Positions 3,021 to 17,488 of a DNA stretch of 64,000 bases are shown one piece after another. Location: sequence record NC_031127.1, one strand, 5' to 3'. The notes under the pieces are model-generated. The model was not told the DNA's origin and searched no databases. It saw only the letters and a program-made list of their open reading frames with translations. How positions within the stretch are numbered: the first letter of the stretch is position 1; every line of letters starts with the position of its first letter. Made by a program: the position numbers and the translations under genes.

Positions 3021-3650
3021 GTACTGACCCAGTGCATCTTTTCGGGCTGGGTAGGGTTAATGTCCCTACCTGCGCGGTGTTCGTTAAGGCTGGTAACGTT
3101 CGCTAAGACCTATCGCATACCCGTAAGTCGATAGCAGCCGGTTACACAAAGAACTATCCATGTGGTAGGTAACCGACCGTTCACGATCTCATTAGGTGAG
3201 CAAATAATCTATGCAAGGACTTCTAGGATTTGTGCTCGACATGATGGGCAGCTTACGCCGCCTCATCAAGCAGTTACGAATCTGGAAGCTTGCCCATTAC
3301 TGGTTTACAGGCGAAAAGGCATCTCGTGAGAGTGTGCCATGCAAACTGCGTATTTACATTAGTATGTTCACTGCGGTGAGCATAGGTCAAGCCCCGGAAC
3401 GATAAGCCGGTCAGCTACGCCTGTAAAATACAATCTGAAAATCATAATGGGATTAAGTTCCCAGATTTGAAAAGGCGACTGTGTGTCGTCGGCGATAACC
3501 CCCCGTCGTGGACTCGGTTATCCCAAAGGTAATGTGAAAGGGGTTGGTGCTTGGAGGCGCTAAGACCGGCGGATACGCTGGCTCAGAAGAAGAAGAAGTC
3601 CATCAACCCCGTTCTCACCTGAGTAACACCCTTTACAAGGCGTTACTTAT
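3021..3650 (+). ncRNA. candidate large (~630 nt) structured non-coding RNA
   Basis: No credible ORF; more than 12 helices, including long-range TTTACAGGCG/CGCCTGTAAA, ATGGGCAGCTT/AAGCTTGCCCAT and GGGGTTGGTG/CATCAACCCC; begins at the G of a TATG. Confidence 0.6.
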
Positions 3651-3671
3651 ATATGCGAAAGCGAGGTGAAC

Positions 3672-3998: not shown

Positions 3999-4029
3999 AA
4001 GTCTAATTACAAGAATACACTGTATTATG
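3997..4029 (+). promoter_or_regulatory. phage promoter for the main tRNA/ncRNA operon
   Basis: 22-bp exact copy of 826-847 followed by TATG (4026-4029). Confidence 0.55.
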
Positions 4030-4108
4030 TCGGAAACCCGATTTGATGTTGCACAGAGCGTTACGCTGCGGCGTTTGCTGGTGTGCAGGGTTAGGTCGGG
4101 ATTCTGGC
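4029..4108 (+). ncRNA. 80-nt rod-like hairpin RNA at the operon 5' end
   Basis: GTCGGAA/TTCTGGC, CCCGA/TCGGG and TGCAC/GTGCA stacked helices. Confidence 0.45.
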
Positions 4109-4116
4109 ACCTATTT

Positions 4117-4202
4117 GGCGGGTTACTCAAGCGGTCAACGAGAGCAGACTGTAAATCTGTTGCCTTCGGGCTTCGTAGGTTCAAATCCTTCACACGCCAC
4201 CA
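4117..4202 (+). tRNA. trnY: tRNA-Tyr (GTA), with stem mismatches
   Basis: Loop CTGTAAA, long variable arm, CCA end; G-A mismatch in the acceptor stem and T-T in the T stem. Confidence 0.88.
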
Positions 4203-4208
4203 AACAAT

Positions 4209-4428
4209 GGTACCTGTCACAGCAGCCCTTGAGGCTTACGCGATGATGACTGGTCGCCCATTTTACCGGGTAACACATTCCTGCCAGCGCGCTATTGCCG
4301 CGAAGGTTTGCCCCCGGTGTTGTGCGTTATTCGGGTCTACCCACCATCTGCGGATGGTGCGTTGATGTCTCGATATACGCCATAGGGACGCCTTGAGAAC
4401 TCCGTGAAATTCGGAGAGGTACCACCCA
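4209..4428 (+). ncRNA. ~218-nt tRNA-like RNA (acceptor stem + T-arm with large insert)
   Basis: GGTACCT/AGGTACC acceptor, CTCCG-TGAAATT-CGGAG arm, ends ACCCA; internal helices. Confidence 0.55.
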
Positions 4429-4495
4429 TTCTTGTGTTTCCTTATCCTGAAGACATTCCTAAGACAAATTCATTCATGGTCGAGGAAACACAGAA
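4429..4495 (+). ncRNA. hairpin with conserved 37-nt loop, copy A
   Basis: 13-bp stem TTCT(T)GTGTTTCCT/AGGAAACACAGAA; loop similar to 5579-5615. Confidence 0.55.
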
Positions 4496-4503
4496 CCTAT
4501 TCA

Positions 4504-4579
4504 GGTGCTATCGTCTAGTGGCCGAGGATACTACCCTGTCACGGTAGAGACCGGAGTTCGATTCTCCGTAGCACCGCCA
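4504..4579 (+). tRNA. trnD: tRNA-Asp (GTC)
   Basis: Cloverleaf, loop CTGTCAC, CCA. Confidence 0.95.
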
Positions 4580-4587
4580 TTTTCAAA

Positions 4588-4663
4588 TGCGTCTTAGCTC
4601 AGTTGGTAGAGCGCACCCCTGATAAGGGTGAGGCCACTGGTTCAAGTCCAGTAGATGCAACCA
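4588..4663 (+). tRNA. trnI: tRNA-Ile (GAT)
   Basis: Cloverleaf, loop CTGATAA, CCA. Confidence 0.95.
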
Positions 4664-4670
4664 GTATTGC

Positions 4671-4747
4671 ATTCCCGTCATCTAGTTGGTCCAGGATACG
4701 ACACTTTCACTGTCGGTACACGAGTTCAAATCTCGTCGGGAATACCA
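4671..4747 (+). tRNA. trnE: tRNA-Glu (TTC)
   Basis: Cloverleaf, loop CTTTCAC, CCA. Confidence 0.95.
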
Positions 4748-4752
4748 TTTGT

Positions 4753-4843
4753 AGAGAATTGACTGAGTTGGTTTAAGGTGCTCCCCTGCTAAGGGAGTGT
4801 ATGCGAAAGTGTACCATTGGTTCGAATCCAATATTCTCTGCCA
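4753..4843 (+). tRNA. trnS: tRNA-Ser (GCT)
   Basis: Loop CTGCTAA, long variable arm, discriminator G, CCA. Confidence 0.93.
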
Positions 4844-4844
4844 T

Positions 4845-5018
4845 GTTCTCTTGCTGTGGGAAATAGAAGCGAACGTAGAAACGCCGGTTAGCTCAAAGCT
4901 TAGAGCGTCTCATCTTCGGATGAGAAGGTTGGGGGCGCAACCCGAAATCCCTATCGGCAACGGCCTGCTTGTCAGGATTAGAAACATCTACGTGGATGGG
5001 TACTTCTACAGCAAGAAC
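4845..5018 (+). ncRNA. multibranch RNA enclosing a tRNA-like module (4883-4959)
   Basis: Outer stems GTTC..TTGCTGT/ACAGCAAGAAC and TAGAAG/CTTCTA; inner D-arm-like AGCTC..GAGC and an anticodon arm capped by cUUCGg. Confidence 0.5.
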
Positions 5019-5042
5019 AAAACAGTGGGAGCATTGTCCACT

Positions 5043-5151
5043 GTGACACCGGCAAAGGTTTCGACCTTGCGGGTTGGGCGGAAGCCCGATGTTCCCCCGA
5101 ACGCTGGCCTTCTGGCCAATACAGTGAAAGCTTACCCTTGCCGATGATCAC
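5043..5151 (+). ncRNA. multibranch structured RNA
   Basis: CGGCAA/TTGCCG and GGGT/ACCC close four tetraloop hairpins (TTCG, GGAA, CCCC, TTCT). Confidence 0.45.
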
Positions 5152-5224
5152 CTCTTCTGCTGCTGCCAACACACTGTATAACCAGAATCAGTCCTGCCTT
5201 AAATGGCAAGCGTTCACCCTTTAC

Positions 5225-5302
5225 GTTTCCTCAAGGCGGCTTGGGGTGTTATCTCTCGGCTCTGTTGGGTAACATCGTGGTTCAACTCCATGGGAAACAC
5301 CA
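5225..5302 (+). tRNA. aberrant tRNA-like RNA, anticodon unassignable
   Basis: Acceptor GTTTCCT/GGGAAAC + A + CCA, T-arm CGTGG-TTCAACT-CCATG; 4-nt D loop; 9-bp anticodon-position stem with a 14-nt loop. Confidence 0.55.
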
Positions 5303-5308
5303 AACAAT

Positions 5309-5400
5309 GGCTCCGTAGCTAAATCGGTAGAGGCAGACTTTAATTAGTTCTCCAACGATTTTATAATCGCGTGGTGTAGGTTCAAGTCCTACCGGAGCAA
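5309..5400 (+). pseudogene. degenerate type-II-like tRNA (possibly derived from Leu-TAA)
   Basis: GCTCCG/CGGAGC acceptor, GTAGG-TTCAAGT-CCTAC T-arm, long variable arm; 6-nt anticodon loop, no CCA. Confidence 0.5.
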
Positions 5401-5474
5401 GAGCACTGCTGTTAAGTTGGTTAACACCCGACCCATACTCGGATATTCGCACGTTCGATTCGTGCCAGTGCTCG
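5401..5474 (+). tRNA. atypical tRNA with CAT anticodon (Met or Ile2)
   Basis: GAGCACT/AGTGCTC acceptor, loop CCCATAC (C33 instead of U33), T-loop TTCGATT; CCA not encoded. Confidence 0.65.
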
Positions 5475-5484
5475 CCCTTATTTA

Positions 5485-5560
5485 GACTCTGTAGTTCAGT
5501 TGGTAGAACGGTGGACTGTTAATCCATATGTCGCAGGTTCGAGTCCTGCCAGAGTCGCCA
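5485..5560 (+). tRNA. trnN: tRNA-Asn (GTT)
   Basis: Cloverleaf, loop CTGTTAA, CCA. Confidence 0.96.
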
Positions 5561-5566
5561 CATTTT

Positions 5567-5626
5567 GCATTGCCCGAGTCCCGAATGACATTCCGGAAAA
5601 ATATCATCCATGGTCACGGGCAGTGC
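5567..5626 (+). ncRNA. hairpin with conserved 37-nt loop, copy B
   Basis: 10-bp stem GCATTGCCCG/CGGGCAGTGC; loop similar to 4445-4481. Confidence 0.55.
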
Positions 5627-5831
5627 AGAACCAAAATCCCAGCCTTCGCAGAAAAAGCTTACCTGCATTAGCGGTCCCCTGCGGGGGTTGGGTACCACCT
5701 TTGTCCGTTTTGTTTTTTTCTTTCAATTGCCTGGCGGTATTGGTGGGAACAAAACGGGTAAAGCCCTAGCGGGGGAAAAGCCGTTAACAACAACAGAAGC
5801 AGTAAAAACAGAAGTAAAAGCAGGAGTAGTT

Positions 5832-6644
5832 ATGTTTACTATCTTACGCAAAATCAATGGTAACCGCACACCAACCGAACACGAATCCCCTACGCTGGGT
5901 GATACGAAGTCACAAGTGTTCAAAGATGCGATGTCGCTTCTTACCGAATCCAATAACGTGCATAACTGCATGGATTCTGGGATGGATGCGAAGCCGTGGA
6001 TTAACGGCAAACCCAAACCGATTGAGGAGTGGGTAGAGCGCTTTAAGAAAGCGTACGGCGCGACAGACTCAGACAACCAAGAACTGGTTTCTCTGGTCAG
6101 TGAACTCGCACCGGGAATGTTTGACAAAGCCAATGCGCGTTTTGCATCGGACTTTGGTCAACTGGAAGAAGCCTTCCTGAAAGATACCGGGCAAACTATC
6201 ATCTGGAAATGTCCGAACGGACTCCCGATTGATATCCAGTTCCAAAACATTCCCCGTCAGTCTGTTGAAACACTACATACCACGCTCGATTTCATCGAAG
6301 CGGATGAGTTGAAGTTTGCGGTGTTCAACAGCAAGGCGTTGTGGGATGGGTATAACTCCGCTGAACTGTTTGGCGGTGAAGCCACCGAGATTTCCTCGGT
6401 AGAACTCCAACACGTTTACTTTGACGATACGGCCATGCCGCAAGAAGCGGTGCTCAAAGCCAACCGTCGTGGTACCCGCACTATGGAACAGGTCATCGGG
6501 GTGCTTGCTTATGGCAGCTCCGAACAACCCGACCCAACCACAGGCAACGTGCCGGTCACAGTGATGACCTACGAGTTTATCTACCAAGGCGATGAAGTCT
6601 ACATTACGAACCGTCACGGTAAGACCGTGGACTCCATCCGTTAA
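5832..6644 (+). CDS. hypothetical protein
   Basis: AGGAG SD before ATG 5832 (MFTILRK...); the track's start at 5610 overlaps structured RNA. Confidence 0.8.
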   Translation: MFTILRKINGNRTPTEHESPTLGDTKSQVFKDAMSLLTESNNVHNCMDSGMDAKPWINGKPKPIEEWVERFKKAYGATDSDNQELVSLVSELAPGMFDKANARFASDFGQLEEAFLKDTGQTIIWKCPNGLPIDIQFQNIPRQSVETLHTTLDFIEADELKFAVFNSKALWDGYNSAELFGGEATEISSVELQHVYFDDTAMPQEAVLKANRRGTRTMEQVIGVLAYGSSEQPDPTTGNVPVTVMTYEFIYQGDEVYITNRHGKTVDSIR

Positions 6645-6746
6645 GCATTAGCATGCTCGCTAATACCCGCCCTGAGGATTGGCCTCCTCATGCTTGAAGG
6701 GCGACTCTCCTGTAGTACGCTTTGTAAGTCGACGTAAATCGGTACG

Positions 6747-6789
6747 CCCTCTCCCCGAAAAGGGAGAGGGTAGTATCGTATATTTTTTT
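6747..6789 (+). terminator. intrinsic terminator
   Basis: CCCTCTCCC/GGGAGAGGG stem with a downstream T run. Confidence 0.55.
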
Positions 6790-6794
6790 GGATA

Positions 6795-6810
6795 TATATT
6801 ACCTAGGTGA
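6795..6810 (+). promoter_or_regulatory. early-type phage promoter KATATTAYC-N3-GTGA
   Basis: TATATTACCTAGGTGA; one of six copies; contains the phiKZ early motif TATATTAC. Confidence 0.65.
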
Positions 6811-6859
6811 GATTAAACTATAATCTTTTACCCATCATTAGACTTTCGAGGATAAACTT

Positions 6860-17398: not shown

Positions 17399-17432
17399 AA
17401 TGAGGTAATTGCACCCTTTCGAGTGCAATTAC
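17390..17432. terminator. terminator between convergent genes (main polarity minus)
   Basis: GTAATTGCAC/GTGCAATTAC 10-bp stem with an A tract on the left. Confidence 0.65.
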
Positions 17433-17488
17433 AAGTTATTCCCTATTATATGTAAACCGGAATGGTTTACGGGGGAGGGAGTAAATTC

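Follow-up and report, generated by a model that had tools for sequence, protein, structure and literature searches.

The transfer RNA (tRNA) cluster of a jumbo phage raises the question of what the long segments between its tRNA genes are, and what they may be for. We address it here for positions 4007-5831 of the window, the 64,000-nucleotide stretch of DNA analysed, which corresponds to bases 1-64000 of Erwinia phage vB_EamM_Huxley (KX397368, 240,761 bp, genus Machinavirus) and is identical to it in sequence. Huxley, whose isolation host is Erwinia amylovora ATCC 29780, can be considered a phiKZ-like jumbo phage, since its genome contains several split "RNA polymerase beta" genes, that is, it encodes a split multisubunit RNA polymerase (RNAP), and phages of this kind are transcribed by their own virion and non-virion polymerases (PMC7598289). 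As far as sequence comparison can tell, the inter-tRNA segments are at least nine conserved folded RNAs within 1.8 kb, most of them tRNA-shaped and devoid of an anticodon. Three families among them (TLE-1, TLE-2 and the hairpin family hpA/hpB) are kept outside the Huxley clade, in up to five genera, with compensatory base changes, and others are the anticodon-less cloverleaves E3, E4, tL1 and tL2. The reading that we favour, with moderate confidence, is that 4007-5831 would be a tRNA operon driven by a phage RNAP, in which genes for structured non-decoding RNAs, mostly tRNA-derived, are placed between the tRNA genes.

The original prediction, made from the DNA letters, had described a single non-coding array, made up of real tRNAs in alternation with tRNA mimics and structured RNAs, and every item that it named was found at or near the place it had been given, including two multibranch RNAs, two aberrant tRNA-like RNAs, a tRNA with a CAT anticodon and a stem complex after hpB. 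The non-tRNA elements are the following (z, thermodynamic z-score, which ranges from -1.8 to -6.6 over the structures of the region):

4209-4427, + strand: TLE-1, tRNA-derived non-decoding RNA of 219 nt, preceded by AACAAU (covariance model, covariation)
4430-4499, + strand: hpA, 11-bp stem with a conserved loop of ~40 nt (nhmmer; z = -3.8)
4849-5016, + strand: E3, multibranch RNA with a 13-bp closing stem (z = -3.2; consensus fold, alignment A2)
5027-5098, + strand: E4, 72-nt cloverleaf with a 9-bp closing stem and a CC tail (z = -2.7)
5099-5219, + strand: TLE-2, 121 nt (homologues, covariation; z = -3.5)
5225-5302, + strand: tL1, tRNA-shaped, with a canonical T-loop (UUCAACU) and an encoded ACCA (fold, covariation)
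5309-5401, + strand: tL2, with canonical acceptor, D-arm and T-arm and no encoded CCA (Rfam, 31.4 bits)
5562-5634, + strand: hpB, 12-bp stem (5565-5576/5617-5628) with a conserved loop of ~40 nt (z = -3.9)
5638-5700, + strand: E9, long stem followed by U-ACCA-CC (z = -2.75)

Structured RNA families shared among genera

TLE-1, first seen as a 218-nt tRNA-like RNA, is closed by a perfect 7-bp acceptor stem (GGUACCU/AGGUACC), which is followed by a 4-bp D-like stem (GUCA/UGAC) with an expanded loop, by P3, the equivalent of the anticodon stem, which encloses an insert of ~130 nt, and by a 5-bp T-like stem with the 7-nt loop UGAAAUU, before the tail A-CCC. Homologues of 118-156 nt outside the Huxley clade were found through a 19-mer of the T-arm in Asesino and phiEaH2 (Erskinevirus), pEa_SNUABM_29 and SPAsTU (Seoulvirus), pEa_SNUABM_11, Kwan and Wellington (Wellingtonvirus), Serratia phage Moabite, and several metagenomic phage contigs. 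This 19-mer is invariant over five genera, among which the neighbouring genes no longer align as DNA, and every homologue lies within a tRNA cluster, with ACAA(U/C) before it and N-CC(C/U) at its end. The members of the family share the same order of parts: a 7-bp acceptor stem, a 4-bp D-like stem with a 24-35-nt loop, one nucleotide, the anticodon-stem equivalent GGC.A.GC / GC.A.GCC enclosing a variable domain of ~30 nt (SPAsTU) to ~130 nt (Huxley), a variable loop of 6-7 nt, a 5-bp T-like stem with the loop UGNNAUU, the 3' strand of the acceptor, an A (U in Moabite), and CC. Because this topology follows the order of acceptor, D-stem, anticodon stem, variable loop and T-arm, TLE-1 is best regarded as derived from a tRNA.

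Here and below, counts of compensatory changes come from alignments and were set against controls made by sliding and shuffling. The acceptor stem of TLE-1 covaries, with GGUACC in the Huxley clade versus GACAC(C/U) elsewhere and C-G, U-A or U.G as pair 6, and the D-like stem, tabulated by script because MAFFT shifts it by one column in some rows, comes in seven sequence versions, with Watson-Crick pairs throughout in 11 of the 12 members. A covariance model (CM) built from eight homologues from outside the Huxley clade finds positions 4209-4427 as its single match in the 64 kb, over its whole length (model positions 1-147 of 147), with 42.8 bits and E = 6e-8, an E-value that is rough, as the calibration was shortened. 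In a 14-sequence alignment (A10), 93.5% of the cells pair, versus 35-52% in the slid controls, and nine pairs show compensatory changes; this alignment was fitted to the model and so leans toward structure, a bias that the slid controls and the separate table of the D-like stem temper. The T-arm scan over 185,579 bacterial species genomes gave 84 matches, none of them TLE-1-like after filtering and all taken as chance, and a scan of metagenomes returned five true copies, all phage-like, so that the family appears to be phage-specific. A second, weak TLE-1-like match is present in Moabite (L026:2094-2219, 24.5 bits).

Two other interpretations of TLE-1 were tried and rejected. Its insert is not an intron, since there is no Rfam intron match and the shortest homologues leave no anticodon loop, and a tmRNA-like tag frame in the conserved GCAGCCAAUAAA... 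segment is discarded because its variation is that of a covarying helix (G-C to A-U) and because G3.U70 is absent. A home-made scan for modules formed by an acceptor, a T-hairpin and NCC yielded ~33 background matches per strand in shuffled sequence, which makes its total uninformative; the subset with seven perfect Watson-Crick pairs is the only one enriched in the cluster.

The hairpins hpA and hpB, noted earlier as two loop motifs, are both present and homologous to each other. Their loop (GACAUUCC ... CAUGGUC) is conserved in sequence, not in pairing. Over 16 distinct copies of the stems, from three genera (alignment A5), 98.4% of the cells pair, versus 44-56% in the slid controls, with compensatory changes in 6 of the 12 pairs. 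hpB always begins 2-4 nt past the CCA of tRNA-Asn, and does so in Machina-, Erskine- and Seoulvirus phages; its paralogue hpA is clade-specific and is placed directly after TLE-1. A role as intrinsic terminators does not fit these hairpins, which are followed by CAGAACC and no U-run, nor does a kissing interaction between the hpB loop and the TLE-1 insert, as hpB is conserved in phages without TLE-1.

TLE-2 combines a perfect 7-bp acceptor-like stem (GAACGCU/AGCGUUC), a side stem, a 4-bp hairpin with the loop UUAAAU (UUARAU in the family), and the tail A-CCC. Its homologues, of 78-101 nt, are found in Caitlin, ChrisDB, pEa_SNUABM_4, _9 and _11, and in metagenomic phage contigs, and outside the Huxley clade they mostly have (A)CAAU before them and N-ACAAUGG or N-ACAAAGG after them. 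In Caitlin, which encodes ACCA, the acceptor-like stem carries the double change of A2-U71 to G2-C71 (GGACG/CGUCC). Within the family, the hairpin pairs C-G/C-G are replaced by G-C/U-A (alignment A9), and the side stem UUCUGG/CCAGAA by UUUUCAU/AUGAGAA.

tRNA-like units of the Huxley clade and E9

E3, found in the Huxley clade only, nests a tRNA-like unit (4883-4958), in which UUCG caps an "anticodon" stem of 7 bp, alongside an acceptor stem and a D-arm. The D-arm-like 5' half of E3 resembles that of tRNA-Ile, and in pEa_SNUABM_43 the "anticodon" arm has another sequence with the pairing kept. Of the three arms of E4, one ends in a UUCG and another in a GGAA tetraloop, and the closing stem shows the compensatory changes C-G to U-A and G.U to G-C (A2 columns 188-189/249-250). 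In tL1, a tetraloop hairpin takes the place of the D-arm and a 10-bp rod that of the anticodon arm; three pairs of this rod are compensatory (A2 columns 407-409/434-436). In tL2, a 36-nt insert stands where the anticodon arm should be, so that 17 model positions are skipped in the Rfam match, and relatives carry in the same slot different tRNA-like RNAs whose acceptor and T arms are canonical. The GenBank name "tRNA-Ile(aat)" for tL2 is not credible, as the anticodon arm is absent; to our knowledge, A34 occurs in bacteria in tRNA-Arg-ACG only. The stem of E9 is kept with a different sequence in distant relatives, where the N-ACCA tail is also conserved (alignment A7).

A canonical anticodon arm, with a 5-bp stem, a 7-nt loop, U33 and a purine at 37, is absent from tL2, the nested unit of E3, E4, tL1 and TLE-1. 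On the + strand, Rfam at E <= 10 gives no tRNA match for TLE-1, hpA, E3, E4, TLE-2, tL1, hpB or E9.

Selection on the inter-tRNA segments

The segments were compared with those of five relatives from the Huxley clade (Parshik, pSal-SNUABM-04, pEa_SNUABM_6, _10 and _43). The non-tRNA blocks are 91-99% identical, while the third codon positions of the flanking genes reach 75-95% and the true tRNAs 70-74% (Asp), 82-89% (Tyr) and 84% (Asn). Since their identity exceeds that of third codon positions and of several true tRNAs, these blocks do not behave as neutral spacers would, and their structure is conserved in relatives, the opposite of the unconserved structure that the original prediction had named as evidence against the array.

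Taken at the level of sequence, these comparisons show RNA-level selection on many predicted tRNA-derived folds, which retain the parts read by tRNA maturation enzymes, namely a 7-bp acceptor stem stacked on a T-like hairpin, the ACAAU-G junction and the N-CC tail, and in which the anticodon loop has been lost and replaced by tetraloops, rods or large inserts. The ACAAU spacer precedes TLE-1, tL2 and the TLE-2 homologues of relatives, and ACC(C/A/U) tails follow the stems. The spacer reported to recur after CCA was recovered as an exact 13-mer, CACCAAACAATGG, at 4198-4210 and 5298-5310, and the impression that the odd elements look like processed units holds as well, given the ACAAU before them, their G start and their ACC(A/C/U) end.

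The real tRNAs and their exchange

ARAGORN makes seven tRNA calls in the region, including "Ile-aat" at 5308-5401, and Rfam adds an eighth, with a CAT anticodon. The Rfam criterion for tRNAs (gathering threshold of 29 bits) is passed by Tyr, Asp, Ile, Glu, Ser and Asn (47-76 bits) and by the CAT tRNA:

4117-4202, + strand: tRNA-Tyr (GTA), CCA encoded (ARAGORN; Rfam, 47.1 bits)
4504-4579, + strand: tRNA-Asp (GTC) (ARAGORN, Rfam)
4588-4663, + strand: tRNA-Ile (GAT) (ARAGORN, Rfam)
4671-4747, + strand: tRNA-Glu (TTC) (ARAGORN, Rfam)
4753-4843, + strand: tRNA-Ser (GCT) (ARAGORN, Rfam)
5402-5477, + strand: tRNA with a CAT anticodon, Met or Ile2 (Rfam, 38.9 bits over 5402-5473)
5485-5560, + strand: tRNA-Asn (GTT) (ARAGORN; Rfam, 76 bits)

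The CAT tRNA has the anticodon loop CCCAUAC, with C33 instead of U, and the tail G-CCC without CCA; it carries no annotation in the Huxley, Machina and Parshik records, and ARAGORN calls its orthologue in relatives Met-CAT. In the Parshik record, the tRNA PARSHIK_11 (L002:1617-1704), Tyr-GTA according to ARAGORN, is labelled tRNA-Asp(gtc).

The tRNA set varies in relatives, where Gln, His or a second Asp appears and Ser is lost in one. The alleles of Tyr, Asp, Glu and Asn are clearly different in close relatives (70-89% identity), as opposed to the 91-99% of the blocks between them, which suggests that the tRNAs would be exchangeable cassettes within a fixed scaffold of structured RNAs. The tRNA clusters of pEa_SNUABM_6 (L004:3320-3838) and pEa_SNUABM_29 (L011:1071-1607) contain open reading frames (ORFs) resembling HNH/NUMOD4 homing endonucleases, and the one in pEa_SNUABM_6 sits in the T-loop region of tL1, replacing its 3' part.

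Three of the four GUN anticodons are covered by the Huxley cluster (Tyr, Asp, Asn), and close relatives add the fourth, His. Phage tRNAs can replace host tRNAs cut by defence systems, as understood for the tRNA-Lys of T5 against PARIS and for tRNA-Tyr against a retron effector (PMC11455837, in part). The real tRNAs of the Huxley cluster, among them those with GUN anticodons (Tyr, Asp and Asn, plus His in relatives), could act as such replacements. However, this role needs a functional anticodon, which the mimics do not have.

Promoter, leader and extent of the transcript

Four more features frame the cluster:

4007-4029, + strand: phage-type promoter-like motif TTACAAG-N12-TATTATG, with G4029 as the likely start of the transcript
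4029-4109, + strand: 5' leader rod hairpin of 81 nt (minimum free energy -49.8 kcal/mol, z = -6.6)
5699-5763, + strand: U-rich hairpin (inverted repeat; z = -3.0)
5767-5786, + strand: small conserved hairpin, just upstream of the A-rich leader and AGGAG of gp20, with one compensatory pair (A7)

The motif TTACAAG-N12-14-TAT(A)TG occurs four times in the window, always on the + strand (836, 3633, 4007 and 17429). Its copies precede tRNA-Trp (836-865), gp11 (3633-3662) and the tRNA cluster (4007-4029), the fourth lying at 17429-17458, and those at 836 and 4007 also have AAAAGTCTAA in common upstream. In alignments with other genera the motif is kept upstream of the leader of tRNA-Tyr. Thus, the promoter proposed to precede the array is present, but it is not of the host type: TTACAA and TATTAT would be just 10 nt apart as sigma-70 boxes, and a sigma-70 promoter scan of the + strand was empty. 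Promoters of the phiKZ type are either AT-rich around -10 or marked by T(-3)ATG(+1) (PMC7598289); the Huxley motif fits this description and probably represents the promoter class of one of the phage's own RNAPs. At 5169-5182, within TLE-2, ACACACTGTATAAC resembles the -10 part of the motif at 4015-4028 with three mismatches and without TTACAAG, a resemblance of chance-level quality.

The rod hairpin, another element of the original prediction that was recovered, starts at the G of TATG, and 12 of its 32 pairs show compensatory changes (RNAalifold, eight phages). Twelve pairs with compensatory changes are also seen in the U-rich hairpin at 5699-5763 (A7), which may be part of the 5' untranslated region (UTR) of gp20 or a weak terminator. 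The terminator scan made a single weak call, at 5681-5704, and none between the array and gp20. The first strong hairpin with a U-run lies after gp20, at ~6740-6790, yet it was not called by this simple scan. The gp20-gp21 intergenic region around it (6645-6859) is 97-99.5% identical in relatives, versus 57-88% at the third codon positions of gp21 (fold z = -3.0), and contains a 10-bp GC-rich hairpin, a U7 run a few bases later (a candidate terminator), and an AT-rich tract.

Processing and possible functions

If the region is a phage-driven tRNA operon, a single precursor would be transcribed from G4029, with the rod hairpin protecting its 5' end. Host RNase P would cleave between ACAAU and G at each junction, the ACC ends would be finished by 3' trimming and the CCA-adding enzyme, and the products would be eight tRNAs together with stable tRNA-shaped small RNAs (TLE-1, E4, TLE-2, tL1, tL2 and E9), hpA and hpB being left over between two processing sites. 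Bacterial RNase P recognises the stack of acceptor and T-arm, favours U at -1 and pairs with a 3' RCC, preferences with which the ACAAU-G leaders and N-CC tails agree. Trimming and CCA addition would be needed on this transcript anyway, because the CAT tRNA ends in GCCC and tL2 has no CCA.

The most speculative step is that the released anticodon-less mimics might act in trans, occupying proteins that read the acceptor end or the body of tRNAs, such as enzymes of tRNA processing or modification, or host toxins directed at tRNA 3' ends, with decoding undisturbed. They would not be simple decoys for anticodon nucleases, because most of them lack an anticodon loop. A decoy function, one of the roles suggested for the array in the original prediction, is a plausible hypothesis; the window contains no host defence gene. 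Its broad form, in which SPN3US- and phiKZ-like enterobacterial jumbo phages would keep CCA-ended anticodon-less RNAs as decoys or sponges for acceptor-end or elbow readers, is a speculative proposal that we think rather unlikely; the targets would be abortive-infection toxins of the host that modify or cut tRNA 3' ends, or its tRNA-processing and tRNA-modifying enzymes, and the effect would be a translation apparatus protected or re-tuned with decoding untouched.

Several points weigh against stable tRNA-derived products from a separate operon. Antisense targets of the hp loops and of the TLE-1 junctions, searched in the window, were found at chance level, and literature searches on these RNAs yielded no account of them. 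For E3 and E4, the comparison covers a single narrow clade with few substitutions. Neither UGNNAUU in TLE-1 nor UUARAU in TLE-2 is a canonical T-loop, so that recognition by RNase P and the CCA-adding enzyme is assumed. The array may continue into gp20, in which case part of it would be 5' UTR. Asesino, which carries TLE-1 and hpB, is a nucleus-forming chimallivirus (PMC11724907), and should Huxley form a nucleus as well, host enzymes could act on the transcript only after its export.

The main rival, possible although we do not expect it to be right, confines the elements to a role in cis, as folding insulators, processing punctuation or stability elements for the excision and dosage of the tRNAs, or as the 5' UTR of gp20, the fragments themselves being functionless. 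In its favour, the elements occupy precisely the intervals from one processing site to the next, structures like the leader hairpin and those at 5699-5786 are what one expects at transcript ends or in UTRs, and both the missing terminator before gp20 and the failure to find a trans target in the window fit this explanation. However, punctuation needs neither five or more distinct tRNA-like architectures nor a 40-nt loop conserved in sequence in three genera, nor a T-arm 19-mer invariant in five, and tRNAs of relatives are packed 3-9 nt apart without such elements, which indicates that processing does not require them.

A role at the DNA level, with the blocks serving as homology arms or target sites for tRNA-cassette exchange and homing endonucleases, is improbable. 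It would account for tRNA alleles and content that vary among close relatives between fixed blocks, and for the HNH ORFs inserted in the clusters of pEa_SNUABM_6 and pEa_SNUABM_29, to which segB in the T4 cluster is a parallel. Homology arms, however, do not need conserved stems, and the compensatory double substitutions, including G.U pairs valid on the transcribed strand only, point to selection on RNA.

Comparison with described RNAs

It is very improbable that the elements belong to a described non-coding RNA family, such as tmRNA, YrlA, 6S RNA, group I introns, GOLLD/ROOL or the T4 RNAs rnaC/rnaD, even though their tRNA-like domains recall tmRNA and YrlA, and GOLLD and ROOL lie near phage tRNAs. 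Rfam 15, searched at the gathering thresholds and at E <= 10 over the window, the region and seven relatives, returned only tRNAs and tRNA-driven noise; no non-tRNA element matched a family, tL2 alone fitting the generic tRNA model, marginally. The best YrlA scores (RF02553; 25.7 and 14-15 bits, against a gathering threshold of 69) lie over real tRNAs. As for tmRNA, with which the elements share an acceptor stem and T-arm module on a non-tRNA body, as they do with YrlA, there is neither an ARAGORN call nor an Rfam match, the T-loop of TLE-1 is non-canonical, and its pair 3:70 is U-A or C-G instead of the G.U of tmRNA.

The closest precedent is found in T4, whose species 1 and 2 RNAs (rnaC and rnaD) are stable RNAs known since the 1970s that are released from the tRNA-cluster transcript by tRNA-type processing. 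By this precedent, the Huxley elements would also be cut out by the tRNA-processing machinery. Like them, the T4 RNAs (119-139 nt, function listed as unknown) lie inside a phage tRNA cluster in the orientation of the tRNAs, with a homing endonuclease gene in the cluster (segB in T4, HNH genes in Huxley relatives), and rnaC has a canonical T-arm next to its terminal stem, a partial acceptor stem. The kind of RNA is thus not wholly undescribed, although an undescribed system had been suggested. Nevertheless, the T4 cluster has two such RNAs versus at least nine elements in Huxley, a phiKZ-like lineage with its own RNAPs, and neither sequence nor model comparison detects similarity between the two sets: the T4 locus has no match to the TLE-1 CM, and BLAST gives only a generic T-loop 11-mer, on tRNA-Ser. 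Huxley also has several complete anticodon-less cloverleaves, and TLE-1 and TLE-2 have full 7-bp acceptor stems and ACC tails.

Two other systems offer partial parallels. The 3'ETS-leuZ RNA of E. coli, from the spacer of a tRNA operon, is a sponge for small RNAs (sRNAs) that works through Hfq and base pairing with them. hpA, placed between a CCA-type end and the next RNase P site, would likewise be a by-product of tRNA maturation; contrary to 3'ETS-leuZ, hpA and hpB have long stems and a large conserved loop, and no pairing target was found for them in the window. The TMER vtRNAs of MHV68 and mascRNA have the shape of tRNAs but do not decode; their cleavage is by tRNA-processing enzymes, CCA is added to them, and hairpin RNAs stand directly downstream of the tRNA-like unit, as in Huxley. 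These are, however, eukaryotic Pol III or nuclear systems yielding microRNAs, without homology to the Huxley elements, and a weak Rfam match to mascRNA falls on the genuine tRNA-Asp. A 2026 review of jumbo phages makes no mention of tRNA-like RNAs. What is already known, then, is the presence of stable non-tRNA RNAs in a phage tRNA operon; what is new are the families, their density, the repeated loss of the anticodon loop and the covariation across genera.

Also very improbable is a mixture of tRNA pseudogenes in decay and spacers under no selection: an origin from tRNAs with loss of the anticodon loop is clear for several elements, and the tL2 slot varies among relatives, but conservation lies above that of synonymous sites, helices are kept by compensatory change, and TLE-1, TLE-2 and the hp hairpins persist across genera.

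Protein-coding annotations over the cluster

The least tenable explanation takes the segments as protein-coding, as in GenBank (gp17 at 4851-5147 and gp20 from 5610), since the ORFs exist in Huxley but fail in comparison with relatives, in agreement with the earlier claim that no credible protein gene is present. gp17, annotated over E3 and with a TTG start, has a 1-nt indel causing a frameshift in 3 of 5 lineages, its variable columns are spread over the codon positions without bias (16/11/11), and it has no Pfam match. The annotated start of gp20 (HUXLEY_20) is an ATG within the hpB loop, and its orthologues in five relatives are annotated as 813 nt, without the extension, from starts that match position 5832 of the window:

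5832-6644, + strand: gp20 coding sequence (CDS) with the corrected start, AGGAG 6 nt upstream, the first real protein gene downstream of the cluster

The third codon positions of gp20 are 75-87% identical in relatives, as expected for coding DNA, and the first 222 nt of the annotated gene (5610-5831), which overlap hpB, are probably non-coding. In Moabite, a 40-residue "hypothetical protein" (CPT_Moabite_078, L026:1473-1595) is annotated over the TLE-1 copy (79.5 bits with the CM); this CDS is probably spurious.

Concluding remarks

The immediate consequence is an annotation to correct, with two spurious or mis-started CDSs, a spurious "tRNA-Ile(aat)" and a missing CAT tRNA, errors that recur in relatives. 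Beyond this, three covarying families spread over multiple genera provide a comparative handle on the structure and key nucleotides of these RNAs, and the phenomenon known from T4 recurs, in a much richer form, in an unrelated lineage of jumbo phages. If the elements were only processing scaffolds, they would show a phage building a long, nuclease-resistant tRNA precursor. If they were decoys for tRNA-directed defences, an RNA-based class would be added to phage counter-defence, and the species 1 and 2 RNAs of T4, unexplained for ~50 years, might share the same kind of function.

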